Shown here piece after piece: positions 9,244 through 44,826 of a stretch of 64,000 bases of DNA. Made by a program: the position numbers and the translations under genes. Position 1 is the first letter of the stretch; each line of letters begins with the position of its first letter. Below the pieces are notes generated by a model. The model did no database searches. It had not been told where the DNA came from and saw nothing but the letters and a program-made list of their open reading frames with translations. The stretch lies in the sequence record AP017925.1; one strand, 5' to 3'.

Positions 9244-9318
9244 TTCAGGTATCCGAAAAATGGAGTTGGCGATCAGAGAGTGGGACAAGCCCACTCTCCT
9301 CACTCAGACAGTTGTTGA

Positions 9319-11094: not shown

Positions 11095-11237
11095 GGTTTT
11101 TTCTCCATTCGAATGGAATTAATCTAAAGAAATCGCGCGATTCTTGAATAGGACAAATTCCCCGCCAGCATAAATGACGGCGAGGCTGTTCTATACAATG
11201 GTGTTTTGGCTAGGCGGTATTTACACCGCCTAGGCCA

Positions 11238-11837
11238 TTATCGGGTGTTATGTTCGCCGAAGAAGGTGTACAAGCTGGTCACCATGTCGACGAAACCGCC
11301 GGGATGAGACAGCCACTTCGCGATTACGTTGTGCAGGTTAGCCGTCGTCTCGTGCTGATGACGGAAGCTATAACCAGTCGGCAACATTGCCAGCAGCACT
11401 TCATCGTAATCCGGTTTATCACTCGGATCGTTCGAACCCGGCCCGATCAAACGCTCCCACATCCCTACCGGCATGTGGCGCTTACCGGTTACGATGAACC
11501 GGATAGTGTCAGTGATGAAGTCGGCATGTGTTTGCGTGATCAGCGGAGAGGCTTGGTTGATGCGCGCCCACTCGGTGAAGTTGTTGACGCCGAAAGCACG
11601 CAGAGCAATCTTGATCGCGCGCTCACGGAACTCGAAGTCGGTATGGATCACCTGACGACGGATCATCTGGTTGTAGATTTCCACCACCGACTCATCCGCC
11701 ACAACGTGCTTGATGGCTTCGGGACTCAGATCGAAGACCGAAAGGATCGGACGAGCCCGCCACGTCTGGTAGGTCTCGCTCGCCATGGCCTTCGAACCGA
11801 AGAAGCCTCGCACGTACAGTTTGAGGTCATCACGCAT
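11238..11837 (-). CDS. conserved phiKZ-like virion-block protein
   Basis: 199-aa ORF tightly coupled to 11841-12737, phage-typical codon usage. Confidence 0.6.
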   Translation of the reverse strand: MRDDLKLYVRGFFGSKAMASETYQTWRARPILSVFDLSPEAIKHVVADESVVEIYNQMIRRQVIHTDFEFRERAIKIALRAFGVNNFTEWARINQASPLITQTHADFITDTIRFIVTGKRHMPVGMWERLIGPGSNDPSDKPDYDEVLLAMLPTGYSFRHQHETTANLHNVIAKWLSHPGGFVDMVTSLYTFFGEHNTR

Positions 11838-11840
11838 GGA

Positions 11841-12737
11841 TCAGTCCTCATTCAGCTCTGCGATCTCACGGGTGAGGTCATCCGTGAGGGATTGCAGATA
11901 GGCGATCTCGCGTTCCAGCGCGGGATCTTCTTTGCCTTGACGGGCACGTTCCAGCTGCATCAGGCGCAGCTTGGCCATTTGCAGCTCGGTTTCTGCTTCC
12001 TTGGCCCGGGCGATCTTGGCTTCCACGCGATGCATGCGCAGACGACGGATCGGGTTCCAGGCAAAGTTGCTGGTCGAAAACAGGAACGGGTCGATCTTGG
12101 TTTCGCCGATCGTGTTCTTCAGGTTGGTGTAGTTGGTATCGTCAGCCAGGATATCCGGGATCTGGTCCAGACGTTCCACCATGTCACCAGCAGAGCGGGT
12201 GATCACTGCGATCGCGTTGCAGTACGGCACCAGGCCTTTCTGGAACGCTTCGATCTCGTACGGAACGAGATCGGTAGTCGGAATCGCTTCGAGCTTCTTC
12301 TCGTCGCGAGCGGCCGCAGTCTCGGTCTTCAGGGCGTAGGTGAGCAGCTTCGAGGTGTAACGGGCCGAGAAGGTGATCGCGTCGACCAGCTGCACCAGGT
12401 TGGCCTTACGATAGTTCAGGCCTTTTGCAGCGATCTTGTCTTCGAACTCACCAGCCACGATGGCTTCGAGTGCGTCGATGGTGGCTGTGATGTTGCTGAT
12501 GTTGCCAGCCAGGTAGCCAAAGATACCTTTCCCGCCTTGGCCTTTGACCACGCCGGAAAAGACTTGTTGCGCACGCTTCATTTCGTCGCCTTTGAACTTG
12601 GCGCCGAATGCCTTATCTGCGCTCGCCAGCACGCTGGAAGCAGCGGTGTACTGGTTGCGGGCAAAACGCAGATCTTCCAGCAGTCCGGATTTGCCGAACA
12701 TGGAAGCGATTTGTTGAATGTAGGTAGTGATTTTCAT
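11841..12737 (-). CDS. inner-body/head protein (phiKZ gp89-like by synteny)
   Basis: C-terminal coiled coil; lies next to the gp90-like gene; start moved to MKITTY. Confidence 0.55.
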   Translation of the reverse strand: MKITTYIQQIASMFGKSGLLEDLRFARNQYTAASSVLASADKAFGAKFKGDEMKRAQQVFSGVVKGQGGKGIFGYLAGNISNITATIDALEAIVAGEFEDKIAAKGLNYRKANLVQLVDAITFSARYTSKLLTYALKTETAAARDEKKLEAIPTTDLVPYEIEAFQKGLVPYCNAIAVITRSAGDMVERLDQIPDILADDTNYTNLKNTIGETKIDPFLFSTSNFAWNPIRRLRMHRVEAKIARAKEAETELQMAKLRLMQLERARQGKEDPALEREIAYLQSLTDDLTREIAELNED

Positions 12738-12818
12738 GTTTTTACTGAATCGCTCTCTGCGAGACAAAGATGGACGGTACAAACAATAGCGGAGGCCTCA
12801 GCCTCCGCCATCACTTGC

Positions 12819-14114
12819 TTACAGGCGCGGAGTCGAACCCGCGCGGAAGGCGTTGAGGACGTCACCGATGTCCACACCACCACCCTTGCTGGAGGCTTTC
12901 AGATCGCGCTCGGACAGCTCGGTGTATTCCGGGATGTCACGGGTGTACATGCGAACACGGCCCCACTGCTTGTCGATGATGAACATCAGCATGCCGTAGC
13001 CTTGCTGAAACAGCTTCTGACGGGTGTTAAAGTCCTTCAGCTTGCCGTAGATCTTCATCTCCAGCGCTTCGGCCGAAGCCTGCGACATGATGATGATGTT
13101 CGATGCGTTGTTGGCCGAGAGGCTGGCCGACAGAGCCGCGGACAGGCCATTCTGGCGACGCTTCTGCATCATCTGCAGATAGATGCCGGTTTTGTCGGCA
13201 CGCAGGTTCTGCTTGTGGGTATCGATCAGATCTTGACAGAACACGAGGTCACGCCAGAAGTCGATACCACCCAGGCGCCACTTCTTGAAACGTGCACCGA
13301 AGCTGATGTCTTCCGAGCCGGAGGCCAGGATGTGCACCAGCGGGGCAGTTGCCATGTACATGGCGTTCAGGCGAATCAGCACCGGAACCTGCACTTCACG
13401 ATCGTTGTCTTTGATCGTAACGTTGATCATGCGACCAACGCCCAGGTTCACCGGGTCGCTGATGTCCACGGTCTTGCCGATCGAGGCCGAGGAGCTACCG
13501 TTCAGCGTGGAAAGTGCAGCCTGCTTGGCAGCATCTTTCATGTTGGTCGGAGCGGTCGGTTGCGGGGTGTTCTTGCCAGCGGCTTGTTGGCCCTTGACCT
13601 TGAACTGGTCATTCGATTCCAGAGCCGGCGTGGCTTCAACATTGGAAGCACGTTCAGCAGAAGCTTCGGCGTCTTTCAAGACGGCTTCTTCGAGTTCTTT
13701 GATCTCGGCCGGCAGTTCGCGGACTTCACCGTCAACTACGAGGCGATCATCGAACTCTTCGAGGGCCGCGGAAGCGATGCTGCCGAGGCTGCTTACGGCT
13801 GCGCCGGTCGGCGAACGACGCGTCGAAAACTTGTCCAGACGTTGCAGAACACTGGCATTGCCAATGCTAATGTTGTGCATTGAAAATGCCCGCAGGTAAT
13901 AACCTGCGAAGACCGATTGTGCGAGCTGGAGCGTATCCGGCAGCAGGTCCGAGCTGCGCAGATCTTCGTCAACCAGAGCAGTGGGCTCGACGGTGCCTGC
14001 CTGGGCATATCCCACCAACGAATCACCGTTGGGCAGGTCGGCCAGCATCTTGAAGCCATGCTCGATGGCGGCGCCAGCCACCTTCATTCCAGCGGCTGCT
14101 GCAAGAGTATTCAT
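12819..14114 (-). CDS. inner-body/head protein (phiKZ gp90-like)
   Basis: SLxxY..VEPxxLxD and FAGYYL motifs recalled from this family; AALEE and PALES processing sites. Confidence 0.6.
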   Translation of the reverse strand: MNTLAAAAGMKVAGAAIEHGFKMLADLPNGDSLVGYAQAGTVEPTALVDEDLRSSDLLPDTLQLAQSVFAGYYLRAFSMHNISIGNASVLQRLDKFSTRRSPTGAAVSSLGSIASAALEEFDDRLVVDGEVRELPAEIKELEEAVLKDAEASAERASNVEATPALESNDQFKVKGQQAAGKNTPQPTAPTNMKDAAKQAALSTLNGSSSASIGKTVDISDPVNLGVGRMINVTIKDNDREVQVPVLIRLNAMYMATAPLVHILASGSEDISFGARFKKWRLGGIDFWRDLVFCQDLIDTHKQNLRADKTGIYLQMMQKRRQNGLSAALSASLSANNASNIIIMSQASAEALEMKIYGKLKDFNTRQKLFQQGYGMLMFIIDKQWGRVRMYTRDIPEYTELSERDLKASSKGGGVDIGDVLNAFRAGSTPRL

Positions 14115-14144
14115 TTTTTGATTCCCAGAAAAGAAGGATTTACG

Positions 14145-15302
14145 ATGTCGAATATGTTTACTGATGTCTGGGGCAGAACCTTTACCCAGGGCGGAACGGT
14201 AAACGGCGTGGAGGACGTTTGGGCGCGCAGCGCTATTGGCAATCCTGGTGTTGCAGTTACTGAAACCCTGTACGGTCTAAACCACCGGAGTCTCGCTAAC
14301 AGTATTCCCATTAATAAGGACTACTATGGCTTGGCGTTCTTCACCCGACCGGATTTGCGCTTCACCAACGATAACTTGTTGAAGCTGCGCAAATTCGTTC
14401 CGATGCTCACCACACGAGAAGCCTCGTTGCCGCGCGCCATCCGCGCCATGCTGGATTTTCGCCACAACACTCATAATGAAGAGAGCTACAATTGTAGCCT
14501 GATTGATCCGAAGCAGGCGTTTATTCCTCTTCTGACCAATCAGCTCGTCAGTATGTCTGGTTGGCCGGATCTCGAATTGCCCACCTACACCAGTGAAGCC
14601 GGGGTGTATGGTGAGATGTTTTCTTTTGCCGATGGTATTTCCGAGGTCTATCGGACTTGGGACATGACGGCAAATTTCCGCAATATCCCAGGTGACCCGA
14701 TCACCTCGATGTTCTACTACTGGTTGATGTATGCCCAAGCGGTCTTCGAAGGAACGCTCACACCGTATGCGGACAACGTTGCAGAAAACACTATCGACTA
14801 CCAGACTCGGATTTACCGGGTGGTTCTGGATTCGACCAAACGCTTTGTTCAAAAGATTGCGTGTACTGGCGCATCATTCCCTACGTCTGTACCGATGGGG
14901 ATGTCGTTCAACTTCGAGACCGACACACCAATCAACCGCCTTGATCAGATTCCGATCAGCTTCCGCTGCATCGGCGCTGAGTATCTGGATGACATGATCA
15001 TCCATGATTTCAATGCGGCCGTCTGTTTCGCTAACAACGACATGTTCGATGATCAGCGCCAAGGAGCGGGGTTGGTGAAGGTGCCGTACGAGTACATCTT
15101 CCTCTTTAACCATCTCGGCTATCCGCGCATTAATGCAAACACATTCGAGCTGGAGTGGTGGGTCTACAACAACACGTTCCAGGAACTGACCGGTGGTAGC
15201 AGCAATACCTCGGATACGGTGAACTTCAACCCGGACGCTGTGGATGCAGGTGACCTGAACACGTACACCGGCAATATTCCAATTAACGGCGTGAAACGAT
15301 AA
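14145..15302 (+). CDS. virion structural protein, baseplate/tube-like (start moved to MSNMFTD)
   Basis: GAAGGA SD upstream of 14145; FFTRPDL, GWPD and DYQTRIY motifs recalled from conserved phiKZ-like virion proteins. Confidence 0.6.
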   Translation: MSNMFTDVWGRTFTQGGTVNGVEDVWARSAIGNPGVAVTETLYGLNHRSLANSIPINKDYYGLAFFTRPDLRFTNDNLLKLRKFVPMLTTREASLPRAIRAMLDFRHNTHNEESYNCSLIDPKQAFIPLLTNQLVSMSGWPDLELPTYTSEAGVYGEMFSFADGISEVYRTWDMTANFRNIPGDPITSMFYYWLMYAQAVFEGTLTPYADNVAENTIDYQTRIYRVVLDSTKRFVQKIACTGASFPTSVPMGMSFNFETDTPINRLDQIPISFRCIGAEYLDDMIIHDFNAAVCFANNDMFDDQRQGAGLVKVPYEYIFLFNHLGYPRINANTFELEWWVYNNTFQELTGGSSNTSDTVNFNPDAVDAGDLNTYTGNIPINGVKR

Positions 15303-15313
15303 AGCTACTCAAC

Positions 15314-18241
15314 ATGTCCACTCTTACAGATCTCAAAGCGAACATCGATTCGTTCCGCTATAACCCGACCAAGATTCAAGGTGCTGTTCTGCGGATGGTT
15401 CGTGACGTCTCTGCTGGTAAGCTCGACATCGTCGATCCCAGCAACCCCTTCGTCTTTCTGGTTGAAGCTTCCGCTACGGTCGGCGCTTCGATCATGACCG
15501 AAAGTGCTACTAACAACCGCAAGCAATATGCACAGGTAGCGCAAACCGTACAAGACCTGTATCGCCACATGCACTACGGTGACTTCAATGACATCTTCGC
15601 TCTGCCGTCGAAGGCTGGCTTTGTCATGGGGTTCAACAAAGATGAACTGATCGCTCGTATGGTGCAGATGCCTGATGGCGATATCCGCAAGATCGTGATT
15701 CCGCGCAACACTACGGTCTCGATCGCCGGCACGCTGTTTAGCTTGCAGTATCCGATCGAAGTGCGTCAGCTCGCGCACGGTGGCTTGCAAGTGGTTTACG
15801 ATACGTCGAAGACCACGCCTTTGAAAAACATCGACACCAACGTAATCGAATGGCAATCGATGCGGCAGGCCGATGGTTCGGAGATGATTCTGTTCCCGGT
15901 AATTCTGGACCAGTTCAATATCATCACGCAAAGTGACGTAGTGAATGGTGCACAGAAGTTCTCGCTGTCGACTACGATCTCCGATCAGTTCTACTTCTGT
16001 CGCGTGTGGCAAGAAACCACCAATGGCTGGGTTGAACTGCCGACTACCTATAGCCAAGACATCTACAGCAACAATGGCCCGGTTGCCATTGTAAAGGTTG
16101 TGGATCAACAGGTGACGGTCGAGATCCCGATCGTGTTTGTCAAGACCGGTCAGATCTCCGGCAAGGTGCGGATGGATGTCTACCAGACCAAAGGCCCGAT
16201 CAGCCAAGACTTGGGAGGCTTTGATCCGAAGCAGTTCACGATCAACTGGTTGGCTATCGACAAGAACGAGCAAGACCAGTACGTGTCTCCGCTCAAGGCT
16301 ATGACGACTGCTGTTGTGTATTCCAGCGCGATGACTACCGGTGGTCGCAATGCCATGACTTTCGATGAGTTGAAGGACCGCGTGATCCAGAATGCTTTCG
16401 GCCCGACCATCCTGCCGATCACGCCAGCTCAAGCGCAGAAGAAGTTGGAGCGTAACGGCTACAACATCGTGAAGAACTTGGACCACGTAACGGATCGTAT
16501 CTTCGCTGCTACACGTCCGATGCCTGATCCGAAAGATGTGGAGCTGATCACGCCTGCTTCGGCTGGCATCCACACGCTGACTGAAACCATGGAGCATCTC
16601 GGCATGCTCTCGACGTCTTACGTGAATAACCAGAGTCTGACTTTGGGGCCGAAGACACTGTACCGTGTGGATCAGGGAGTGCTGAAGGTGGTATCGGATT
16701 CAGAAGTTGCTCTGCTGAATTCGCTACCGGGTGACAAGAAGGCTGTGGTGATCACGGAAGGCTCGTACTTCTACTCGCCCTTCCACTACGTGTTCGATGC
16801 GACTAGCAGCACGTTTGTGTCGCGTTCCTACTATCTGGATTCTCCGAAGATCAACGCGCGTAGCTTCATCGCGGAGAATGGCACCACCTCGTTGCAAGTC
16901 AGCACCAGTAGCGCACAAATCGCACGTACGCCTTCTGGTTGGCAGCTCACCGTCACCACCAACTCGTCGCAGGAGTGGAAGGATCTCGACGATGAAAAAA
17001 CCCACATCACCTTGGCGTACCAGCCGGACCGCTCTGGCGACTATGCCTACACGCTGGGCACTTTGCTTGGCAAGACAACCGCGGGCGAGCGGGTGTACCA
17101 GTTCGACATCAAGACCAGTTATGACATCGACGCGAACAACGCGATGCAATTGACCAACTTCATGATGTACGAACAGTCGCAACAGTTCCTGCGCACGCCG
17201 CTGGAACAGAATTTCGAGTTGTTCTATTCGGTTTCTTCGCCGATGCCGAGCACTTGGACTGCGACGACCTTCGATCCGCTGATTGGTACGTTCCTTCTGC
17301 CTTTTGGTAGCGTCGGCGTGTCTCGTGAACGTCTGGATGTGATTCTGGGTTATTCCCTGAGTAACCTCTGGACACGTGGCCGCACTGTGGTGGGTGAGCA
17401 GGACTACGCGAAGTGGGAAGTGGATGTTCAGGCGACGTACGAAAAGGATGTCTACCAAGCTGATCCGGTAACGGGCGCTGCTTTCACTGTGGTCAATGGC
17501 GTGCTGACCTACAACAAGCTGCATTCGGCTGGTGACCTCGTGTTCACGGGTCCGAACAACGACGTTCCGGTGATCAAGTACGCCAAGGGCTCGATCAAGA
17601 AGGATGCCTACGGTAATCCGATCGTGGTTGGTGGGCGTAAGCTCATGCGCCAGATCGATCTGTTCCTGTTGGAAGCACCGTATTATTTCGCGACCAACAA
17701 GGCAGCTACCGATTATCGTACGCAATTGGTGGACACGATCGTGCAATGGATTGCTGATGACCTCAAGGACATTAGCAAGATGTTGCTGGACAAGACCAAC
17801 ATCTACTTCTATCCGGTGCAGAACGTCGGCTCGGTGGATGTGATTTACGGTGCAGGTCTTAAGTCCACGATCGATGCCGGTCAATACTTCAACCTGAAGC
17901 TGTACGTGAAGGACTCGGTCTACAAGAACGACAAGCTCCGTGAATCGCTCTCCCGTTCGTCGGTGGTGTCGATCTCCGAGTGCTTGAAGTCGAAGACCGT
18001 GTCGAACTCGCAGATCGTCGATGCCTTGAAGATCACCTATGGCAGCGATGTGGTGGCGTTCGATCTGGAAGGGCTGGGTGGTACGGCACAACTCTCCATC
18101 GTCACGATGGTAGATGACTCTGCTCGTCTGACGCTTCGTAAGAAGCTGGAGTATCGTCCGGACCAGACGTTTGCGTTGCGTGAAGACGTGAACATCGAGT
18201 TCGTGGCAGCAGAACGCGCAGGCGTGACGCTGGACGCGTAA
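15314..18241 (+). CDS. large baseplate wedge-like protein
   Basis: 975 aa, beta-rich; TGGRNAMTFDELKDRVIQNA resembles the GG..E....R segment of baseplate J/T4 gp6-like proteins. Confidence 0.55.
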   Translation: MSTLTDLKANIDSFRYNPTKIQGAVLRMVRDVSAGKLDIVDPSNPFVFLVEASATVGASIMTESATNNRKQYAQVAQTVQDLYRHMHYGDFNDIFALPSKAGFVMGFNKDELIARMVQMPDGDIRKIVIPRNTTVSIAGTLFSLQYPIEVRQLAHGGLQVVYDTSKTTPLKNIDTNVIEWQSMRQADGSEMILFPVILDQFNIITQSDVVNGAQKFSLSTTISDQFYFCRVWQETTNGWVELPTTYSQDIYSNNGPVAIVKVVDQQVTVEIPIVFVKTGQISGKVRMDVYQTKGPISQDLGGFDPKQFTINWLAIDKNEQDQYVSPLKAMTTAVVYSSAMTTGGRNAMTFDELKDRVIQNAFGPTILPITPAQAQKKLERNGYNIVKNLDHVTDRIFAATRPMPDPKDVELITPASAGIHTLTETMEHLGMLSTSYVNNQSLTLGPKTLYRVDQGVLKVVSDSEVALLNSLPGDKKAVVITEGSYFYSPFHYVFDATSSTFVSRSYYLDSPKINARSFIAENGTTSLQVSTSSAQIARTPSGWQLTVTTNSSQEWKDLDDEKTHITLAYQPDRSGDYAYTLGTLLGKTTAGERVYQFDIKTSYDIDANNAMQLTNFMMYEQSQQFLRTPLEQNFELFYSVSSPMPSTWTATTFDPLIGTFLLPFGSVGVSRERLDVILGYSLSNLWTRGRTVVGEQDYAKWEVDVQATYEKDVYQADPVTGAAFTVVNGVLTYNKLHSAGDLVFTGPNNDVPVIKYAKGSIKKDAYGNPIVVGGRKLMRQIDLFLLEAPYYFATNKAATDYRTQLVDTIVQWIADDLKDISKMLLDKTNIYFYPVQNVGSVDVIYGAGLKSTIDAGQYFNLKLYVKDSVYKNDKLRESLSRSSVVSISECLKSKTVSNSQIVDALKITYGSDVVAFDLEGLGGTAQLSIVTMVDDSARLTLRKKLEYRPDQTFALREDVNIEFVAAERAGVTLDA

Positions 18242-22978: not shown

Positions 22979-23110
22979 AAACTGTCAGCCATGAATTGTT
23001 GAAATAGACGCCGGCTACGAAGGTCCTCTGTGTAGAAAAAACCTTCGAGTTTCATTCTTTTGAATAGCGGGCATATGGCCTGCGCTAACCATCACAAGAA
23101 TACCTTACAA

Positions 23111-23168
23111 ACTGCAGCGATTGTCATAGTAAAAGACATGTCGTTGCAGTATGAGTACACGACATGTC
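23111..23168 (+). promoter_or_regulatory. mutually exclusive RNA hairpins over the RBS/start codon of the DNA polymerase subunit
   Basis: 23135-23144 pairs perfectly with 23159-23168 (contains ATG 23164); 23111-23120 pairs with 23141-23150 with one G-U. Confidence 0.55.
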
Positions 23169-25047
23169 AACCAAAAAACCTAACTTTTCTCCTGAAGATA
23201 TCTCCGGTGTCGAGTGTCGTCATGTGGTTTTCATTCCACCCATCAAAGATTCGAAGGATGACTATCACCTGATCAAAGAGGTTATCCACCTGAAAGACGG
23301 GCAGCGGGTTCCAAATGTTCGCATAGTGCGTAATTACAAGCGCAAGTTCTGGATCACTAAGGAAGGCTACCGTCGCCATAAGCAAAAGAAAGAATGGGAA
23401 GACATCAGCAAGCTGAAAGAGTACGAGTGCACGCAGTCTGAGTTGGTGGAGAAAGCAGCGAAGGCACTGGGGATGTTCAAGCCTCCTCGCTCTCTCAAAC
23501 AGCTATCGCGCAGCCCGTACCTTTACGGCTCAGATATCCTGTCGACCTCAGTGATCAAGCAGGAAGTGTACCGTAACCGCTGGCCAGAACTGAACACTCC
23601 ATCGTCCAGTGCTGCATCGGATACGGAAACCGATATGGTCCAGGGCCATGGTCGGATCATCATGCAGACCATCTCGATGAAAGAGAAAGTCTATACGGCT
23701 GTAGTGCGTGACTTTCTGAGAGGGGTCGGCGGTACAGATGCTGACAAGATCAAGCTGTGTCAAGAAGCTCTGATCAAGTACCTAGACATCGATGAACCTG
23801 TTCTGAAGAAGGACGGAACGCCGGAGATTGATAAGAAAACCGGTAAGCCCAAGGTCACCAACGTCTATCGTGATCGGAAACTGGAATGGGAAATTGAGCT
23901 GGTTGAGAACGACGGCATGGTCGTTTACAACACGCTCAAGAAGGCTCATGAATGGCAACCTGACTTTATGACCTTCTGGAACATGGACTTCGACATTAAG
24001 AAGATGGAAGAGTCCCTGAAGTTCCACAAGATCCCGCTGGCTGACGCTTGGTCTGATCCTGCTGTTGCACCGGCTTATCGCTTCTATGAGTACAAGGAAG
24101 GTCAGAGCCAGAAAGTCACTGCTTCAGGTAAGGTCACTCCGATTGCTCCGCATGCTCGTTGGCATACCGTGATCACTCCGGCATCCTTCTACGTGATGGA
24201 TGCAATGTGCGCCTACAAGCAGGTGCGTACGGGTAAACAGGAGGAGCGTGCTTATACTCTTGAGTTCATCCTGAACAAGCACTTGAAGCGTGGTAAGCTC
24301 AAGTTCACTGCAGCGGACGGATTGGCTAAGGCGGACTGGCACGTCTTCATGCAGAAGAAGCACCCGATCGAGTACATCGTCTACAACGTCTTTGACTGCG
24401 TAGGTTTGGAGATGCTCGACGAGAAGACCAAAGACTTGTCCGTGTCAGTGCCTTCGGGTGCAGCTATGTCGGACTATTCCCGGTTCAACTCGCAGCCTCG
24501 TCGAGTGGTGGACAAACTCCACTACTTTGTGCAAGCGCGCGGCAAGATCATCGGGACTACTTCTGATGAAATGGCTACCGACTTCGATCAGGAGACGATT
24601 AGCCTCAAGAACTGGATCGTGATGCTACCAGCGCATTTGGTGGCGGACAACGGGCTGAAGATCATCAAAGAGTATCCGGATATCTGCAGTAACTTACGAT
24701 TACACATCGGTGACTTGGACGTGTCTGCATCCTATCCGAATGGTGAATCGGTCTTCAACATCTCCAAGGAGACGACGAAGAAGGAACTGATCTCGATTGA
24801 AGGGGTGTCGGAGAACGTACGACGGATGCAGGGTATCAATCTGTCTGCTGGCGCGACTAATGCTGTTGAGTTCTGTACGGGTATGTTCCATATGCCGCAG
24901 ATGACTCAGTGGCTGGAAGCTTACCGTCGCCAGGATGATCTGGTTCAAGTGGCTATGGATCTCCGTGATTGGGTTGACGATAGTGCAGCAACTGCTGATG
25001 CCGTTATCTCGATGCGGGAAGACGAAGACGAGAACGAGTACGCCTAA
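23164..25047 (+). CDS. split family-B DNA polymerase, exonuclease plus motif-A subunit (phiKZ gp82-like)
   Basis: ExoI SDTETD, ExoII FWNMDFD, ExoIII YNVFD, and polymerase motif A DLDVSASYP near the C-terminus; motifs B and C absent. Confidence 0.8.
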   Translation: MSTKKPNFSPEDISGVECRHVVFIPPIKDSKDDYHLIKEVIHLKDGQRVPNVRIVRNYKRKFWITKEGYRRHKQKKEWEDISKLKEYECTQSELVEKAAKALGMFKPPRSLKQLSRSPYLYGSDILSTSVIKQEVYRNRWPELNTPSSSAASDTETDMVQGHGRIIMQTISMKEKVYTAVVRDFLRGVGGTDADKIKLCQEALIKYLDIDEPVLKKDGTPEIDKKTGKPKVTNVYRDRKLEWEIELVENDGMVVYNTLKKAHEWQPDFMTFWNMDFDIKKMEESLKFHKIPLADAWSDPAVAPAYRFYEYKEGQSQKVTASGKVTPIAPHARWHTVITPASFYVMDAMCAYKQVRTGKQEERAYTLEFILNKHLKRGKLKFTAADGLAKADWHVFMQKKHPIEYIVYNVFDCVGLEMLDEKTKDLSVSVPSGAAMSDYSRFNSQPRRVVDKLHYFVQARGKIIGTTSDEMATDFDQETISLKNWIVMLPAHLVADNGLKIIKEYPDICSNLRLHIGDLDVSASYPNGESVFNISKETTKKELISIEGVSENVRRMQGINLSAGATNAVEFCTGMFHMPQMTQWLEAYRRQDDLVQVAMDLRDWVDDSAATADAVISMREDEDENEYA

Positions 25048-25052
25048 TAGCA

Positions 25053-25090
25053 GCATAAAAGAGGAGGGGGCAACCTCTCCTCTTTTTATA
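25053..25090 (+). terminator. intrinsic terminator
   Basis: GCATAAAA, GAGGAGGG/CTCTCCTC stem, T-tract. Confidence 0.75.
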
Positions 25091-25118
25091 TCATCAACAT
25101 ATTTCTAGAAAGTTAACC

Positions 25119-25616
25119 ATGCGCAACATCATTATCTTTGGTCACAAACAGCACGGTAAGGATACGGCTTGTGAATATCTGGAAGCAAAGTTTGGTGTGA
25201 GCTTTGCTTCATCTTCTCGTTTTGCTCTGGATCTTTTCTTATTTGAAAAGATGTGCGATGAGTCGTTTGGTTACGAAACGCCTGAAGAATGTTTCAGTGA
25301 CCGGGTGAACCATCGTAAATACTGGTATGAGGCAATTCGGGATTACAACACTCCGAATAAGACACGACTGGGCGGGAAACTGTTTGCCGAATACGATGTC
25401 TACTGCGGCATCCGTGACCTAGAAGAGTTCCGCGCGCTCAAAGCTGCTGGATTGGTTAATCTAGCTATTTTCATTGATGCCAGCGGTCGTCTGGAAAAGG
25501 AAGACTCTGAATCCATGAAACTGGATATCGAAGATGCCGATATCGTTATTACCAATAACGGTACGCTGGAACAGTTCTACGAGAAACTGGATAAGCTCTT
25601 CACGCAGCTGCTGTGA
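25119..25616 (+). CDS. deoxynucleoside monophosphate kinase-like P-loop protein
   Basis: N-terminal GHKQHGKDT P-loop, GIRDxxE and DADIVITNNGTLE motifs of phage dNMP kinases. Confidence 0.75.
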   Translation: MRNIIIFGHKQHGKDTACEYLEAKFGVSFASSSRFALDLFLFEKMCDESFGYETPEECFSDRVNHRKYWYEAIRDYNTPNKTRLGGKLFAEYDVYCGIRDLEEFRALKAAGLVNLAIFIDASGRLEKEDSESMKLDIEDADIVITNNGTLEQFYEKLDKLFTQLL

Positions 25617-25674
25617 ACATAAGCGACATAACGGAGAGAGGGGAGACCCTCTCTCCTATTATGCCGTTGTTTGT

Positions 25675-26037
25675 TTACGTACGTGCTTCGCCGTGATACG
25701 GTTTAGCCAACCCTTGCTCGATCAACTGATCGTTGATGCTCTTAGCCGTGTTGGGTAGGAAGACAGTCGCCAGATAGCGACCGTACTTCTCTTGTTTGTC
25801 CTGCACTGTCTGTACCACGACAGCTGTACCCACAGGCAGTGTCTTCTCCACCCATGCCTTGGATGTTTTGCCTGCGTCGGTGTTCTTTTCCGGCGCATTA
25901 ATGCCATCCAGACGGCACCGCATGTTGATACTGATGTCGCAGCCCAGATCTACTTGCAGATCCACGGTATCGCCGTCCACAACGCCGTTAACCTTGGCAT
26001 TGCGGACATACGTTTCTTTCGGTTTGGCTTTTGCCAA
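25675..26037 (-). CDS. thermonuclease (staphylococcal nuclease family)
   Basis: VVDGDT, RxRLxGIxAPE, KYGRYLA and INxxLIxxGLA motifs. Confidence 0.9.
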   Translation of the reverse strand: MAKAKPKETYVRNAKVNGVVDGDTVDLQVDLGCDISINMRCRLDGINAPEKNTDAGKTSKAWVEKTLPVGTAVVVQTVQDKQEKYGRYLATVFLPNTAKSINDQLIEQGLAKPYHGEART

Positions 26038-37905: not shown

Positions 37906-39459
37906 TTACTTCTCCCCTACCGTGTACGGTAGGTCGACCAGGAAACATTGCTTCATGCGGGCGGGCAGTAAGAGTTCTTTGGAGACGTGGTACTCTACCT
38001 GCTTAGGGACATCCATACAAGTGAAATACTCGAACTCCATGTCTACCCCTGGTGTTTCGCGCAACCGACCTGGTCCTTGGATGTTCTTCTTACGCGCCCG
38101 CAGAGACGTCGTCATCAGAACAGTGATCAAGCCCTTGATGTCGTGACCCGTACCTGCAGAACCCAGCGTGGAAACACACACGGTTGCATTCATCAGGTTA
38201 TCGTAAGGGTCCTCCGCTACGTAACGCCGGATGTCCAGATCCGGATGCTTCGATTTCAAGAAGTCCACGATGGTCGTGCACATCTGGATCGAGGCCGCGT
38301 AGATCAGGCATTTCTGCCCAGGATCAAAGCGAGTCAAGAAGCGTTCTTCAAAACGCTCATTGATCAACTCCAGATAGGGCTTCATCAAGAAGCTATAGCG
38401 CTTGGAATAGAAGTTCTTCTCAAACGCGATATGCGAGTACATGGTCGAACCACGCTCAGTGGTCGACAGCTCTTCACCTTTCTTGATGTGGTAGCGCAAA
38501 GCGTACGACGTGATGTACTTAGCGCGCACGACAATCTTGCAACGCTCTTCGACCGGGTAAGCGATCTTGTACATCGACTCCGTAAAGGGATCGTCGTCCT
38601 CCAATGTAGCGGACAGCGAGATAGCGCGAGGAATGTGCGTGTACAAGTCGATCTTGAACATGCTGAAGAATTCTTCGTGCACCTCATCCTTGATTCTCGT
38701 ACCAGCCCGGATGACTTGACAGAACTCCGGAGGCGTACAATCGTAACCCATGTTCAGAATTTCATCACCGTGCTTCTCGTACAGGTTGATGTAGTTCATG
38801 TAGGTACGATTCGAGATCAGGATGGCTTTCTCGGTCAGAGTGCCTTCCTTTGCCCGAGCGATCACATCCATGAGGCTAGCTGCGCCCGCCACGGAAATGA
38901 TGTCCTCTTCCGCCAATCCCAGGTTTTCGACCAAGTCACTCGGCCACTTCTTCAGAAACTTCGGACACAGGAAACCCACGATCCGGAAGTTGTACTCTGC
39001 AGCTGCCCACGAAGCCAGATACGTCTTACCACGGCCAGGGTCAATCCCCACGAACTTACGCCAAGAGGGTTCGGGCACCTTCAAGTACGTGTGAAAGATT
39101 TCGTCTTGGTAATCACGCGATGGCTTCAGCTCCGTAGGAAGCATCGGCGCATTCAGCGGCTCCGGGTCCACGAAGCCATATGTCACTTCAGTGAAGCCGT
39201 GATCAGGCACACCGATGTCAGCGAGGTAGGCGCGCCACTGTTTGTATTGACCGATGTGGAAGTGGATGTGGTTCTTTCGTGGGATATAGGCCGCAAACGT
39301 CTGAAAAGGAAGGCGACGTCCACGTTCCCACTTATACTCGATAAAGTTCCGGGCAAACTTCTTGGCAAGTTCAGCCCCTCTCGGCGACATGTTTTTCACC
39401 ACAAAGTGATGCGAGAATATGTCAATCTCGAAGTATTTGCTTGGCTGTACAGCGCTCAT
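37906..39459 (-). CDS. superfamily-2 DNA helicase (phiKZ gp75/UvsW-like)
   Basis: Motif I PGRGKT, motif II DEVH, motif III SAT, motif V GTGHD, motif VI QGPGRLR. Confidence 0.9.
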   Translation of the reverse strand: MSAVQPSKYFEIDIFSHHFVVKNMSPRGAELAKKFARNFIEYKWERGRRLPFQTFAAYIPRKNHIHFHIGQYKQWRAYLADIGVPDHGFTEVTYGFVDPEPLNAPMLPTELKPSRDYQDEIFHTYLKVPEPSWRKFVGIDPGRGKTYLASWAAAEYNFRIVGFLCPKFLKKWPSDLVENLGLAEEDIISVAGAASLMDVIARAKEGTLTEKAILISNRTYMNYINLYEKHGDEILNMGYDCTPPEFCQVIRAGTRIKDEVHEEFFSMFKIDLYTHIPRAISLSATLEDDDPFTESMYKIAYPVEERCKIVVRAKYITSYALRYHIKKGEELSTTERGSTMYSHIAFEKNFYSKRYSFLMKPYLELINERFEERFLTRFDPGQKCLIYAASIQMCTTIVDFLKSKHPDLDIRRYVAEDPYDNLMNATVCVSTLGSAGTGHDIKGLITVLMTTSLRARKKNIQGPGRLRETPGVDMEFEYFTCMDVPKQVEYHVSKELLLPARMKQCFLVDLPYTVGEK

Positions 39460-39500: not shown

Positions 39501-40181
39501 TCAAGCCTCCTCTCGGTCCATATGCGCGTGCATGATCACACTACGCACTCGGTAGTTTCCTTCATCACCATCCGGAGGGAAGGCAACGATACGTCCATCG
39601 CGATTGGCGTACAAAACATTACGTCCCGTGAATTCAGCAATCGCGAGCGCTGCCGCTTTGGAACGCGATTGACCGTAGTTACAATGCACTATGATATTCG
39701 GACTATCGGTATGTTTTAACACAAAATCGACGATAGCTTCACCGTCTGCGATTTGAGCCCAACGATGCTTGAAGTGATGTTCATCGTATGCCGTAACGTG
39801 GTCATGGAAACCACGATGCAACACCTCTTTAGGTGGGTGGAAGAACTGCGGCGGTTCAGCGTGCGTGTCCGTAATGCTTATGCATACGTCATCCGGACGG
39901 AAGCGATAGCCAGAGGCGATATCGCGGCCCATGAAGATCACATTCCGCTTATCCGTCGGAGCATTGGTGGCATTGTTACGCAAGTGAGTACACAGGTCCT
40001 GTTCGACTCTGTCTCCATACTTGCGCATCGTCGCTTCTATAGCGGCTGGCGAGTTCCTGTCTACAGCTACAGGCTTTTGGGATTTCTGATTGACAATCAC
40101 GGTAGAGCCAGTTTTGGCTGCATGCTCTGCCATACGTTTTGCTTGGAACCGTTGTTCCATCTTGCTAAGCTTTTTAACCAC
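39501..40181 (-). CDS. protein-tyrosine/dual-specificity phosphatase-fold protein
   Basis: IVHCNYGQSRSKAAA = HCX5R(S) motif; start at GTG 40181 (GAGGT SD) or ATG 40160. Confidence 0.75.
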   Translation of the reverse strand: MVKKLSKMEQRFQAKRMAEHAAKTGSTVIVNQKSQKPVAVDRNSPAAIEATMRKYGDRVEQDLCTHLRNNATNAPTDKRNVIFMGRDIASGYRFRPDDVCISITDTHAEPPQFFHPPKEVLHRGFHDHVTAYDEHHFKHRWAQIADGEAIVDFVLKHTDSPNIIVHCNYGQSRSKAAALAIAEFTGRNVLYANRDGRIVAFPPDGDEGNYRVRSVIMHAHMDREEA

Positions 40182-40205
40182 GATAATAACCTCGTAGGAG
40201 TGGTA

Positions 40206-41021
40206 GTGGATACGATCAAAAATGGTATTCAGATCAGGACAGAGGTGGTAGGCAACCAAACGTTGCGCGTTGGCATCCGTGCTGGCAACCCTGCCAAAGC
40301 TCCTCTTCTGTTATTCAACGGCATCGGCGCGAATATTGAAATTCTCGCGCACTTTGTCGATCTGTTCGACGACATCGAAGTCATTATCTTCGACATTCCA
40401 GGGACGGGTGAATCACCGACTCCTCTGGTTCCTTATCATCTTGCTGCAATGGCTGTGTTAGCCAACAATCTGTTGGATCATTTAGGATATGCCCAGCAGG
40501 TGGACGTAATGGGCATCTCCTGGGGCGGAGCGTTGGCACAGGAGTTTGCCTATCTTTATCCCGAACGTTGCCGTAAGCTCGTTCTAGCGGCAACCACGCC
40601 CGGTATAGGGATGGTTCCGGGTAGTATCTCGGTAATCTCCAAGATGCTGAACCCAAAGCGCTACACCAATCCGGAGTACATGACTGAGATTGGGGGAGAA
40701 CTCTACGGTGGAGACTTCCGAGACAACCCGGAGCTGATCAAAGAACACGCCAGTCATCTCAAGCGACCAGAACTACGCGGTTATGTCTACCAGTTGATGG
40801 CGATCATGAACTGGAGTAGCCTGCGTTGGCTGGGAACGCTCAAACAAAAGACCTTGATCATGCACGGTAGTGACGATCCGATCGTTCCGCTGGCTAATGC
40901 TGAGATCATGGCGAGCAGGATTCCCGATTCGACACTACACGTAGTCGATGACGGCCATCTCTTCCTTGTGAGTCGAGCTGCAGAGAGCACTGCTACGATT
41001 CGAGAGTTCCTGCACGGCTAG
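40206..41021 (+). CDS. phaZ: poly(3-hydroxyalkanoate) depolymerase, intracellular PhaZ type (alpha/beta hydrolase)
   Basis: PLLLFNGIGAN, FDIPGTGESPTP, lipase box GISWGG, YPERCRKLVLAAT, GSDDPIVP and DDGHLFL match Pseudomonas-type PhaZ along the whole length; AGGAG SD before GTG 40206. Confidence 0.85.
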   Translation: MDTIKNGIQIRTEVVGNQTLRVGIRAGNPAKAPLLLFNGIGANIEILAHFVDLFDDIEVIIFDIPGTGESPTPLVPYHLAAMAVLANNLLDHLGYAQQVDVMGISWGGALAQEFAYLYPERCRKLVLAATTPGIGMVPGSISVISKMLNPKRYTNPEYMTEIGGELYGGDFRDNPELIKEHASHLKRPELRGYVYQLMAIMNWSSLRWLGTLKQKTLIMHGSDDPIVPLANAEIMASRIPDSTLHVVDDGHLFLVSRAAESTATIREFLHG

Positions 41022-41091
41022 ACAAAAAGAAAAAGACTGCACAAAAGCCCGGAGGTCTCCCTCCGGGCTTTATGACGTCGAGAAGCAGGCG

Positions 41092-41561: not shown

Positions 41562-42020
41562 TCAATTCCAATGATACTCCAGTTTGTTTTGCCGGTACTC
41601 GCCTTTGGTTACGTCACTGAGACGAAACCCATAGCGCTTAACGAATGCACGACTGTAATCATGCATCATTTCCTCCGCAACCGTGCAATGCGGAGTCTCA
41701 CTTTCCAAATGACTAAGCATCCGGTCGATGAGTTTGAGACCAAGCCCGCTGCCTTGCAAGTCATCATGCACGCGCACGCAGCGTAACTTAGGCTCGATTC
41801 CTACTTTACCCAGCGCAATTCCCGCTAGGCAATTCTTCTCCATCGCAACCAGTACAATGGAATCCAGAGATCCGACCACCTTATTAGCAAACCAGTGATC
41901 GAATCCCGGATAAAAGTGAGTCAGTCCGGTTAGGAACTGACGGGCTTGTACAAGGATACCTGAAGACTCCTCGTGACTGAGGCGAATGATGTCCATGGTG
42001 TTTGTTGGATAAATGCTCAT
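41562..42020 (-). CDS. GNAT-family acetyltransferase
   Basis: LRCVRVHDDLQGSGLGLKL = acetyl-CoA motif A (V..Q/R..G.G..L); RYGF motif B. Confidence 0.75.
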   Translation of the reverse strand: MSIYPTNTMDIIRLSHEESSGILVQARQFLTGLTHFYPGFDHWFANKVVGSLDSIVLVAMEKNCLAGIALGKVGIEPKLRCVRVHDDLQGSGLGLKLIDRMLSHLESETPHCTVAEEMMHDYSRAFVKRYGFRLSDVTKGEYRQNKLEYHWN

Positions 42021-42049: not shown

Positions 42050-42460
42050 TCAGGCTACGAAGCCCATGCCGGACTTGATAACTTGTTCACGGAAGACTTC
42101 GTGCCAGGTTGCGAGTTGTTCACCAGTCAGGCCGTCCTTGTAGGAAGGCCATTCCGTCCCGAGGAAGAAGTGCGCGAAGGCATTGAGCAGCAGGTCGCCC
42201 GTTTCGCTATCCATACCGTACAGCGCGAGCTTGATCCTGGCCTCGGCGTAGAAGAAGAGAATCGTGTCTGCGTTCAGAGTGGAGAACGTGATACCAGTCT
42301 GTTCCTGGAGGAATGCCGCGGCGTCAACGAGACGCGCTGGCGGTAGTTTGGTGTCACGATTGGCAACCAGCAGCTTGCCGAGTTGCTCGACGAGACTCAG
42401 GCGTGCCTTGTCAGATTGTTCGTACTCACGTACTGCTACGATCGGTTTTGCGATTACCAT
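42050..42460 (-). CDS. hypothetical protein
   Basis: 136-aa ORF in a co-oriented run. Confidence 0.55.
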   Translation of the reverse strand: MVIAKPIVAVREYEQSDKARLSLVEQLGKLLVANRDTKLPPARLVDAAAFLQEQTGITFSTLNADTILFFYAEARIKLALYGMDSETGDLLLNAFAHFFLGTEWPSYKDGLTGEQLATWHEVFREQVIKSGMGFVA

Positions 42461-42749
42461 GTTTCTTCATCCTTTCTTTAATGAAACGGAACAGCTCCCT
42501 ATTGAGAATCGGGATGCTGATAAGAACGAGATTAAACCCCGGCAGGGTTGCGATAAGAAACCACCAACCAATCCCTCCCCATTTCAGGTTATACCCGAAC
42601 TTGGACGTGTTTTTGCGCCAAGGCTCGCGATACATCCGGATGTCTTCCGAAATCATTACACCAAGCAAGTACAGCGTGAACACCAAGCTCAGACCCAGAT
42701 AAGCCAAACCTACCCATTTCCAAATACTCATTTTTCTTTTTTCCAGCAC
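42426..42749 (-). CDS. small two-TM membrane protein
   Basis: Two hydrophobic segments and a basic C-terminus; overlaps the next gene. Confidence 0.5.
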   Translation of the reverse strand: MLEKRKMSIWKWVGLAYLGLSLVFTLYLLGVMISEDIRMYREPWRKNTSKFGYNLKWGGIGWWFLIATLPGFNLVLISIPILNRELFRFIKERMKKHGNRKTDRSST

Positions 42750-42783: not shown

Positions 42784-44826
42784 TTAGTAGTTACCAGGAC
42801 CATTCTGCAGATTGCGCACCCGCTGTTGATGATCGAATACCTCACGCGGCATTACGATGCCGTCGAAAGGATGATCCGGTCGATTCTTCAGCGAGAACGA
42901 TTCCGGTGCGTAGATACCTTCAGCGTGATGTTCGTACGCCATGAAAGGAGCCAGCGAACGATACAGAATGATGTTACGCAGCACACCCAAGCCACTTTCC
43001 GTCCACGGCTTCGGCATCGAGTAGTCGTAACGTTCTGCAGAGCGGATCAGCGCCCCACGCAACGTCACTTCCACCACGGCGAGGTTTACCCGCGCCTTAC
43101 GGTTCATCAGTTCGGTCAGCTCCACGAGAGTCGAGGCAGGGTCGATCAGGCGATCTCGCTCCACCACTTCCTTCACGGTCGATTCCAACACCTTCGCGAT
43201 GTCTCGCGAGTGGTCAGACATGCTGAAGTCACGCATCGGCAGCGAGGCAAACGGCACGCTCCACTTCCAGCCCTTCAGCGGGATCATGTAGCAACCAGTC
43301 TCTTCATCAACCGTGTAGCTATGAGTCTTGACGTGCTCCAAGAACTCATACGTGAGGAACGGCAGACGTTTACCATCCTGCAGACTGATTTCTTCGCCTT
43401 CACCCTTGCCATTGCGAATGATCACTTCCGACAGTTCCGACATCCGCGATTCCGGCAACACCTGGAGGTTATCCACGATGAAGATGTCGCTCAGGTTCGG
43501 TGCTGCTTCGCAGTCGAACATCAAGAACAAGTCCCCATTCTTGGAGTTTGCCTTCAGCGTGTCGGCGAACAGGTAGCGGTTACCGTCGGTGGACAGCTTC
43601 ACGAACTGCTGGGTCCGTGCATCGATCGTCGCACCTGCGATGCTCTTGGACGAGTCCAAGTGCTTCGTAGACAACACACCCTGCGCGTTCTTTTCAGTAA
43701 CGTGGGTGCAGTTGGCGTGACCGATATTGCTGTTGGCCGGGATCAGTTCGGACATCATCCCGTAGCATACCGAGCAAATGCCGTTCGGATCAGTCGGATG
43801 ACCGCAGTACATCGCGCTGCGCAGCTTCAGCGTTCTGCCGATGAGGTGCTTGTCGTCTTTGTGAACGGTCTTGAGGATACCGTCGTCGTCAACGAAATGC
43901 TTACCTTCCAGGATCTCCAGATCGCTCGGACGATCCTCGCGTTTGCCTTGCACTCGCCAGTTGAGGTAGCGAGTCGTACCGCAGTCCATATGGTGCAGGC
44001 GTTCCACACCCATGTCCATCGTACGCAGCTTACGCGAGAAGTATTCCGTATCCTGCAGGTCGCCCTTTGATGCATTCAAGGCCTTCGCTGCAGAGCGCGA
44101 CTCGATCTGGATGTCCCGTTGCGAGCGGATACCCTGATAATAGCCGCGCATGATCGGAATACCGAAGCGCTCGTTGTTGATGTCCGTCAGGAAGCCGCGA
44201 GGCCCCAGACACTGATGTACCTGCTTGGACGATACCAGACCAGAACGATACAGCTTGGACAGAGCGTTGTTGCGCAGCTCCGGCTTGTGCTTCAGCACCG
44301 AATCGATCGTGTAGTAGATATCCGCAATGGACTCTTCGTCCGGCTTTGCGCGTTCGTACGCATCCACTACGTCCTGATCCTTGAACACCCGGTGGAAGTC
44401 GAACAGGTTCAACGAGGTTACGTACTCTTCCAAGCGCGTTACCATGTCGTTATAGTGCTGGTTCGACAGGTTGTACGCCAGCTCGGCCAGCTCAAACCGG
44501 ATATCGACCATCTGTTCGATGTTGTGTGAGGCGGCCAGGAAGTCTGCACAATCCCACAACACGTTTTGGATCAGCTTGATGTGGGTTTCCATCCCCACAC
44601 GGTTGCCTTTGAGCACCGACTGGATGTGGTGCTTCTTCAGGATAGGGAGTCCCGGATAGTTCGCATGGAATTCCCAGAAGTACCGGCTGTAGATGACCTC
44701 CTTGTGGTTGGTCTCCAGTTCTTCACCATCGTCAAAGACGAGGATGAACGGCCCCATTAGGGTTTCCCATGTCTGCTCGATGCTCAAACCGAGAATGGTT
44801 CGAGCAGCAATGCGTTTGAGTGACAT
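42784..44826 (-). CDS. non-virion RNA polymerase beta-prime C-terminal subunit (phiKZ gp74-like)
   Basis: SGLVSSKQVHQCLGPRG, YFSRKL, MDCGT, LRSAMYC..ICSVCYG zinc motifs, STKH. Confidence 0.88.
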   Translation of the reverse strand: MSLKRIAARTILGLSIEQTWETLMGPFILVFDDGEELETNHKEVIYSRYFWEFHANYPGLPILKKHHIQSVLKGNRVGMETHIKLIQNVLWDCADFLAASHNIEQMVDIRFELAELAYNLSNQHYNDMVTRLEEYVTSLNLFDFHRVFKDQDVVDAYERAKPDEESIADIYYTIDSVLKHKPELRNNALSKLYRSGLVSSKQVHQCLGPRGFLTDINNERFGIPIMRGYYQGIRSQRDIQIESRSAAKALNASKGDLQDTEYFSRKLRTMDMGVERLHHMDCGTTRYLNWRVQGKREDRPSDLEILEGKHFVDDDGILKTVHKDDKHLIGRTLKLRSAMYCGHPTDPNGICSVCYGMMSELIPANSNIGHANCTHVTEKNAQGVLSTKHLDSSKSIAGATIDARTQQFVKLSTDGNRYLFADTLKANSKNGDLFLMFDCEAAPNLSDIFIVDNLQVLPESRMSELSEVIIRNGKGEGEEISLQDGKRLPFLTYEFLEHVKTHSYTVDEETGCYMIPLKGWKWSVPFASLPMRDFSMSDHSRDIAKVLESTVKEVVERDRLIDPASTLVELTELMNRKARVNLAVVEVTLRGALIRSAERYDYSMPKPWTESGLGVLRNIILYRSLAPFMAYEHHAEGIYAPESFSLKNRPDHPFDGIVMPREVFDHQQRVRNLQNGPGNY

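Follow-up and report, generated by a model that had tools for sequence, protein, structure and literature searches.

A poly(3-hydroxyalkanoate) depolymerase-family gene in the Ralstonia jumbo phages RP31 and RP12 and its possible role in host polymer mobilization

ORF266 of Ralstonia phage RP31 is, by profile score and alignment, a catalytically intact member of the intracellular poly(3-hydroxyalkanoate) (PHA) depolymerase family to which Pseudomonas PhaZ belongs. Substitution patterns show that the gene, here called phaZ, is kept under purifying selection in several diverged phage lineages. As a host-type metabolic gene flanked by viral genes in the complete genomes of two cultured phages, RP31 and RP12, it is a candidate auxiliary metabolic gene. 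Mobilization of host PHA is the best-supported role for its product on comparative grounds. The full reading, in which an old phaZ of the Burkholderiaceae type has been kept by phages and hydrolyzes host PHA during infection as an auxiliary metabolic gene, has in our judgment about an even chance of being correct.

The identification itself has been known since 2017, and the present analysis adds nothing to it as an identification. The preliminary description of this DNA had implied that a phage-borne PhaZ was novel; that is not so, since the genome paper of Matsui et al. (2017) lists ORF266 and its RP12 counterpart ORF269 among miscellaneous genes as "a poly(3-hydroxyalkanoate) depolymerase". 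The main text of that paper names ORF266 only within this annotation list. In the databases RP31 ORF266 is deposited as "hypothetical protein" and RP12 ORF269 is labeled "esterase/lipase" in RefSeq. No functional work on ORF266 or ORF269, nor any paper joining a PHA depolymerase with jumbo phages, was found in the literature. What is new beyond the 2017 annotation is evidence on the history of the gene, which points to an old acquisition that was then retained and lost once, and to separate acquisitions by other large phages.

The phaZ gene and its genomic slot

The window, the whole stretch of 64,000 nucleotides that was analyzed, matches Ralstonia phage RP31 (AP017925.1) at 100% identity and differs little from RP12; RP31 ORF266 and RP12 ORF269 are the same gene. 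The features of the region are as follows.

37906-39459, minus strand: RAD2/SF2-type helicase; core gene, left border of the block
39501-40160, minus strand: ORF265; conserved, divergent from phaZ, with an HC-x5-R Cys-phosphatase-like motif; in phaZ-plus and phaZ-minus relatives
40161-40205, no strand: gap of 45 bp separating the starts of ORF265 and phaZ, which diverge
40196-40200, plus strand: Shine-Dalgarno-like AGGAG, 5 nt 5' of the ORF266 GTG; sequence inspected directly
40206-41021, plus strand: phaZ-like coding sequence (RP31 ORF266); 271 aa plus stop; TIGR02240-family serine hydrolase, Ser105/Asp224/His251
41046-41069, no strand: hairpin between the convergent phaZ and ORF267; perfect 10-bp GC-rich stem, 4-nt loop
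41092-41526, minus strand: ORF267; hypothetical, convergent with phaZ
41562-41996, minus strand: ORF268; GNAT acetyltransferase in the variable block; also in IMG/VR contig L015
42050-42460, minus strand: ORF269 of RP31; small hypothetical/membrane gene of the variable block, overlapping ORF270
42426-42731, minus strand: ORF270; small hypothetical/membrane gene, last of the variable block
42784-44826, minus strand: phage RNA polymerase beta' subunit; core gene, right border of the block

ORF266 runs without internal stops from a GTG at 40206 to a TAG at 41019-41021. Translation yields the 271 residues and all the motifs quoted in the preliminary description, namely FNGIGAN (residues 37-43), GISWGG (103-108), YPERCRKLVLAAT (118-130), DDP (223-225) and GHLFL (250-254). 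The N-terminus is hydrophilic, aligns with cytoplasmic homologs from about residue 8, and has neither an extension nor a hydrophobic leader relative to them, so that no secretion signal is evident.

Within the six-gene block between the helicase and beta', phaZ is the lone plus-strand gene. The content of this slot varies among relatives, from one gene in RSF1 and two in FLC1-1B to six in RP31, so the earlier characterization of the region as an accessory island lying between core genes, in a jumbo phage related to phiKZ, holds. No synthase, phasin, hydratase or hydroxy-acid-utilization gene is present in the RP31 phaZ block. The C-terminus of ORF267 resembles the end of a gene of 400-415 aa that occupies the same position in FLC1-1B and in metagenomic contig L097.

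No sigma-70 promoter was identified 5' of phaZ in the 45-bp gap, which is too short to leave obvious room for a separate phaZ promoter. A TTGCT conserved 5' of phaZ was considered as a promoter element and rejected, as it is the coding start of the divergent ORF265. At the other end of the gene, the hairpin at 41046-41069 (-26.7 kcal/mol, z -5.5) is bordered by an A-run before it and a T-run after it and so looks like a two-way intrinsic terminator, likely serving both phaZ and ORF267. It is kept in RP31 and in metagenomic contigs L004, L005 and L097, with one compensatory G-C to A-T double change. The phages that have this terminator-like hairpin use their own multisubunit RNA polymerases.

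Some observations concern the surroundings of phaZ. ORF265, which adjoins the helicase whether or not a phage has phaZ, is a candidate phage phosphatase-like protein; its HC-x5-R(S) Cys-phosphatase signature is invariant among the RP31, L005 and FLC1-1B homologs, and it has weak DSPc and DUSP matches (Pfam E 0.008; PDB E ~0.1). ORF268 is conserved in the phaZ-lacking contig L015 (61% over the full alignment, 79% over the best 80-residue segment) and has a weak PADLOC match to PDC-M11A (E 7e-5). The helicase gene is 1554 nt long in the GenBank records of RP31 and RP12 and 1485 nt in the RefSeq record of RP12 (NC_041911); the longer start is favored because the FLC1-1B, L015 and L097 homologs align from its residue 1. 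Local GC extremes, relative to a window mean of 0.544, are 0.64 at 10001-11000 and 0.48 at 23001-26000.

Family assignment, catalytic residues and predicted fold

In the HMM search proposed beforehand, ORF266 scores 291.3 bits (E 7e-87) against TIGR02240, the NCBIfam equivalog model for poly(3-hydroxyalkanoate) depolymerase, above the curated cutoff of 250.6 bits; the second-best family reaches 102 bits. All four copies of the phage clade described below exceed the cutoff (291-320 bits; the other three 298-320). NF050089 (i_nPHAscl), the model for intracellular short-chain/PHB depolymerases, gives 39.6 bits over residues 53-132 only, below its cutoff of 300. Pfam finds only generic alpha/beta-hydrolase domains, and the PHROGs class of the protein is esterase/lipase. 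PADLOC returned no match for the ORF266 protein, so no link to defense or anti-defense was found.

The preliminary description had called the product a Pseudomonas-type intracellular PhaZ with intact catalytic machinery. Its family and its catalytic residues are borne out; its nearest kin are different, being proteins of the Burkholderiaceae (56-62% identity) as against about 49% for P. oleovorans PhaZ. In the alignment Ser105, which lies in the G-x-S-x-G box GISWGG, Asp224 and His251 are invariant in all 195 of 195 family members and align with residues 102, 221 and 248 of P. oleovorans PhaZ. The published triad of PhaZKT is Ser102/Asp221/His248 (PMC12504323). ORF266 has the FNGIG lid-core loop of the PhaZKT type at residues 37-41, and its hinge reads YVYQLM versus YYWQLF in PhaZKT.

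An AlphaFold model of ORF266, made with 39 sequences, has a mean pLDDT of 91 and the alpha/beta-hydrolase fold. Its helical lid spans about 141-201, and the lid helices lie between strands 122-128 and 215-221. Alignment and model together show an intact triad and a predicted intact lid. In the alignment of 195 members, only one residue fixed in the phage clade differs from the cellular majority, and this single phage-specific change gives no sign of altered function. Structure searches found no solved structure for any TIGR02240 member. As a means of discriminating among functions the structure search was set aside, the matches being only generic esterases and C-C hydrolases.

Phage and cellular relatives of phaZ

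The two database proteins closest to ORF266 (65-66% identity) and a third at 60% come from metagenomic contigs L004, L005 and L097, whose GC contents of 0.52-0.56 are phage-like. In all three contigs the layout is that of RP31, with phaZ as the sole plus-strand gene amid minus-strand genes. L005 contains the helicase end, an ORF265 homolog and phaZ. L097 (17.9 kb) has, on one side, an RNA-ligase-like gene, a muramidase, an ORF263-like gene, the helicase (63%) and an ORF265-like gene leading up to phaZ, and beyond phaZ a 415-aa gene followed by beta'. In L004 the phaZ neighbors match ORF265 and ORF267 weakly by tblastx, and phaZ is the sole match by tblastn with the window proteins.

The PhaZ proteins of RP31, L004, L005 and L097 share 58-66% identity and form a clade with 100% bootstrap support. 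Pairwise pN within this clade is 0.20-0.28 against a saturated pS of 0.70-0.79. A finite dN/dS was obtained for one of the six pairs (0.13); saturation at synonymous sites precluded an estimate for the other five. The phage copies have a GC3 of 0.50-0.63 (0.58 in RP31), versus 0.70-0.85 in the Burkholderiaceae.

phaZ is absent from the closest isolates, FLC1-1B and FLC4-3B, and from IMG/VR contig L015, all of which have an ORF265 homolog. The host of FLC1-1B and FLC4-3B is R. pseudosolanacearum, and their infection of it without phaZ indicates that the gene is dispensable. A helicase tree rooted on RSF1 gives (RP31,(L097,(L015,FLC1-1B))) with support of 96-100%. The phaZ-lacking phages are thus nested within phaZ carriers, and one gain plus one loss is the simplest history. 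The tree topology and the distribution of the gene fit a single old gain, long retention and one loss.

Viral databases had been named as a place to look for other phage phaZ genes, and two were found there. IMG/VR contigs L012 (229 kb) and L013 (307 kb) carry TIGR02240 genes that score 380 and 395 bits and are 45-47% identical to the RP31 copy. Both fall in the Pseudomonas-type clade of the tree, and by this placement they are captures independent of the RP31 clade. L012 is phiKZ-like: its phaZ adjoins eight tandem paralogous ORFs of ~307-331 aa (8886-16580, minus strand) with similarity to "virion structural proteins" from jumbo phages of Erwinia, Pseudomonas and Ralstonia, including FLC1-1B. 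The viral assignment of L013 rests on its IMG/VR label, a thymidylate synthase and ORFans. Among isolated phages, a collection of 50,697 records held no phaZ beyond RP31 and RP12, and none in a small phage. A metagenome scan for new phage copies with the four-sequence phage-clade alignment was also tried; none of its best 80 loci is a new phage copy, all being nearer to cellular PhaZ (GC 0.57-0.70), and the scan says little on abundance, the known contig L005 not being among the matches listed.

Among the matches listed, the cellular PhaZ proteins that come closest (56-62% identity) belong to Cupriavidus, Paraburkholderia, Caballeronia, Burkholderia and Trinickia. The cluster of C. necator and of a Paraburkholderia runs from an acyl-CoA enzyme through a MaoC hydratase, PhaC and a phasin-like gene to PhaZ, and it is the class II model that gives its synthase the highest score. 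A review names this Burkholderiaceae maoC-phaC-phaP-phaZ arrangement the "group C" phaC context (PMC8231600). The canonical Pseudomonas comparator is P. oleovorans (L087), in which PhaZ (614 bits) lies between two class II synthases; a P. silesiensis copy (L016) was dropped as comparator because no synthases flank it. The latter is a second-type TIGR02240-like gene on the 1.17-Mb megaplasmid pPL1, and it groups loosely with the IMG/VR L013 copy (48% bootstrap). Burkholderiaceae PhaZ clusters are also present on megaplasmids, and the maoC-phaC-phasin-phaZ clusters (C. necator, Paraburkholderia; L006 12838-16831, L008 12092-13169) are close to integrase or DDE-transposase-like genes. Their location hints that the whole cluster may be mobile among Burkholderiaceae.

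A phylogeny had been proposed as a way to find the donor genus. The tree does place the phage clade, as sister to the Burkholderiaceae maoC-phaC-phasin-phaZ group and not to the host genus, but it singles out no one donor genus. Ralstonia is absent among the named best matches listed for the phage and Cupriavidus proteins and among the best 80 genome loci. This is suggestive only: the host genus may have no close PhaZ ortholog, and it may still have a distant homolog beyond the matches listed. A recent capture from the host genus was rejected, with no Ralstonia among the matches listed and a best cellular identity of 62%.

Proposed role, alternatives and comparison with known systems

In the sequence of events proposed here, an ancestor of the RP12/RP31 group would have captured phaZ long ago from a maoC-phaC-phasin-phaZ cluster of the Burkholderiaceae type. 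The captured unit would have been one gene, equipped with a ribosome-binding site and a terminator of its own and placed between ORF265 and the next gene. The product, a predicted cytoplasmic serine esterase, would hydrolyze the (R)-3-hydroxyalkanoate polyester of host granules during an infection that lasts 210 min and is independent of host RNA polymerase; the cycle is known to be insensitive to rifampicin. Host enzymes could then convert the released hydroxy-acids to acetyl-CoA and reducing power for phage production, and it is through this fueling that phaZ would act as an auxiliary metabolic gene. Fuel for a long infection had been suggested in the preliminary description and is plausible. 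The bulky granules would also be removed, as a by-product that selection need not have favored. The role is supported by the setting of the cellular relatives, since the sister genes lie in maoC-phaC-phasin-phaZ clusters and the P. oleovorans copy has a class II synthase on either side. Counted against it are the low NF050089 score, a block with no PHA partner genes, the lack of phaZ in the closest isolates, and the failure to find a phaZ promoter.

The main difficulty concerns the substrate. The storage polymer for which R. solanacearum is known is PHB. The activity of PhaZKT is almost confined to medium-chain PHA, and the characterized family members are largely specific for it (PMC12504323). 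This mismatch between the family substrate and host PHB is the weak link of the PHA-mobilization role and a real problem. With no Ralstonia among the PhaZ matches listed, the host may lack the matching polymer. The Pseudomonas chlororaphis enzyme, which also cuts PHBV (44% relative activity) and soluble pNP esters, suggests that some short-chain or soluble-ester activity is possible. Settling the mismatch would reveal either a wider substrate range for the family or a different ester target.

The same enzyme could be of benefit in another way, the second one suggested in the preliminary description, if granules were cleared so that the phage nucleus can form, center and rotate and capsids can traffic, with any carbon gain incidental. 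We consider this unlikely. It draws on the same enzyme evidence as PHA mobilization and faces the same doubt over substrate class. A genome tree groups RP12 with the nucleus-forming chimalliviruses, and TIGR02240 genes recur in large phiKZ-like contigs (L012) and were found in none of the small phages among the 50,697 records; however, the nearest nucleus-forming relatives, FLC1-1B and L015, and all other isolated chimalliviruses lack phaZ. It is likewise improbable that ORF266 acts, through drift or from the outset, on a soluble or lipid ester other than PHA. Such a shift would accord with the preference of characterized relatives for medium-chain units, with the lack of a close ortholog in the host genus among the matches listed, with the hydrolysis of soluble pNP esters (C2 to C10) by TIGR02240 family members, and with generic annotation, in that the best solved structure, Est1, is a generic esterase (30% identity, TM 0.87) and the PHROGs label is esterase/lipase. 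A new specificity is nevertheless argued against by the full lid and by the retention of every family-conserved residue, with one phage-specific fixed change. The leading alternative ester is the host quorum signal, methyl (R)-3-hydroxymyristate or -palmitate, whose cleavage would lower phc signaling and exopolysaccharide near lysing cells. In its acyl moiety this signal has an (R)-3-hydroxy medium- or long-chain unit of the type bound by the TIGR02240 family, and diverse, mutually unrelated esterases (<35% mutual similarity) are published as hydrolyzing 3-OH PAME and reducing EPS. A cytoplasmic enzyme in one infected cell would have little leverage on a diffusible signal, though, and the remaining phage-clade copies are metagenomic, with no assigned host. 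The specific proposal that ORF266 spares the polymer and hydrolyzes 3-OH MAME/PAME, as a quorum-quenching esterase recruited from a PHA depolymerase that lowers phc-controlled exopolysaccharide around the burst, is a slim prospect.

That phaZ has no part in infection, as a neutral passenger, host contamination or a misassembly, is scarcely credible. The gene is dispensable in the FLC1-1B/L015 lineage and is transcribed against the direction of its neighbors, as a passenger might be. Against this, two isolates that were sequenced independently both contain it, as does the IMG/VR copy, and the same locus recurs in three diverged metagenomic phage contigs. Its composition is phage-like and pN is far below saturated pS; catalytic and family residues are intact despite ~40% protein divergence, and the terminator is kept with a compensatory change. 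Contamination and misassembly in particular are ruled out by the second isolate, the syntenic phage contigs, the phage-like composition and the selection on pN.

Mobilization of host PHA stays the preferred reading of ORF266. Retention across diverged lineages, together with the independent captures, suggests a real benefit in long infections of starved, polymer-loaded soil bacteria. Phage auxiliary metabolism has no established class for the mobilization of a storage polymer. It can be examined directly in lytic jumbo phages that are in culture and have an intact depolymerase gene, and the phaZ-lacking sister phages on the same species complex provide a natural comparison.

Virus-borne PHA genes have been described before. 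Phage contigs from PHA reactors carry phaC, phbB and others as metagenomic predictions (PMC12013262), and a phaZ candidate is reported in a Gloeobacter prophage (PMC13317609). As with RP31 and RP12, the idea is that a phage carries a gene for the storage polymer of hosts as part of its auxiliary metabolism. Those genes were predicted from metagenomes, for the most part as synthesis genes or within a prophage, whereas RP31 and RP12 are jumbo phages in culture that are strictly lytic, their genomes are complete, and the gene can be followed through a phage lineage.

Among cellular enzymes, PhaZKT of P. putida KT2440/KT2442 and P. oleovorans PhaZ share with ORF266 the TIGR02240 family, the triad positions, the FNGIG loop, the helical lid and a similar size (271 aa in ORF266 versus ~283 aa). 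ORF266 scores lower on TIGR02240 (291 bits versus 614 for the Pseudomonas enzyme) and has a lid loop 5-7 residues shorter than that of Pseudomonas PhaZ. The Pseudomonas gene is flanked by two class II synthases, and ORF266 is virus-encoded and has no such flanks. The putative group C PhaZ of the Burkholderiaceae shares the shortened lid loop with ORF266. These cellular genes adjoin a class II-like synthase, a phasin-like gene and an enoyl-CoA hydratase, whereas the phage took the depolymerase alone.

Est1, a metagenomic esterase (PDB 6eb3, 8v16), is the best solved match to ORF266 (TM 0.85-0.87, 30% identity) and is likewise an alpha/beta hydrolase with a cap, but it is a generic esterase outside TIGR02240. 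The beta-hydroxypalmitate methyl ester hydrolase of Ideonella sp. 0-0013 and the 3-OH PAME hydrolases from soil metagenomes are possible functional analogs of ORF266. These hydrolases are secreted, and they are likened to ORF266 by type of substrate, apart from any sequence comparison.
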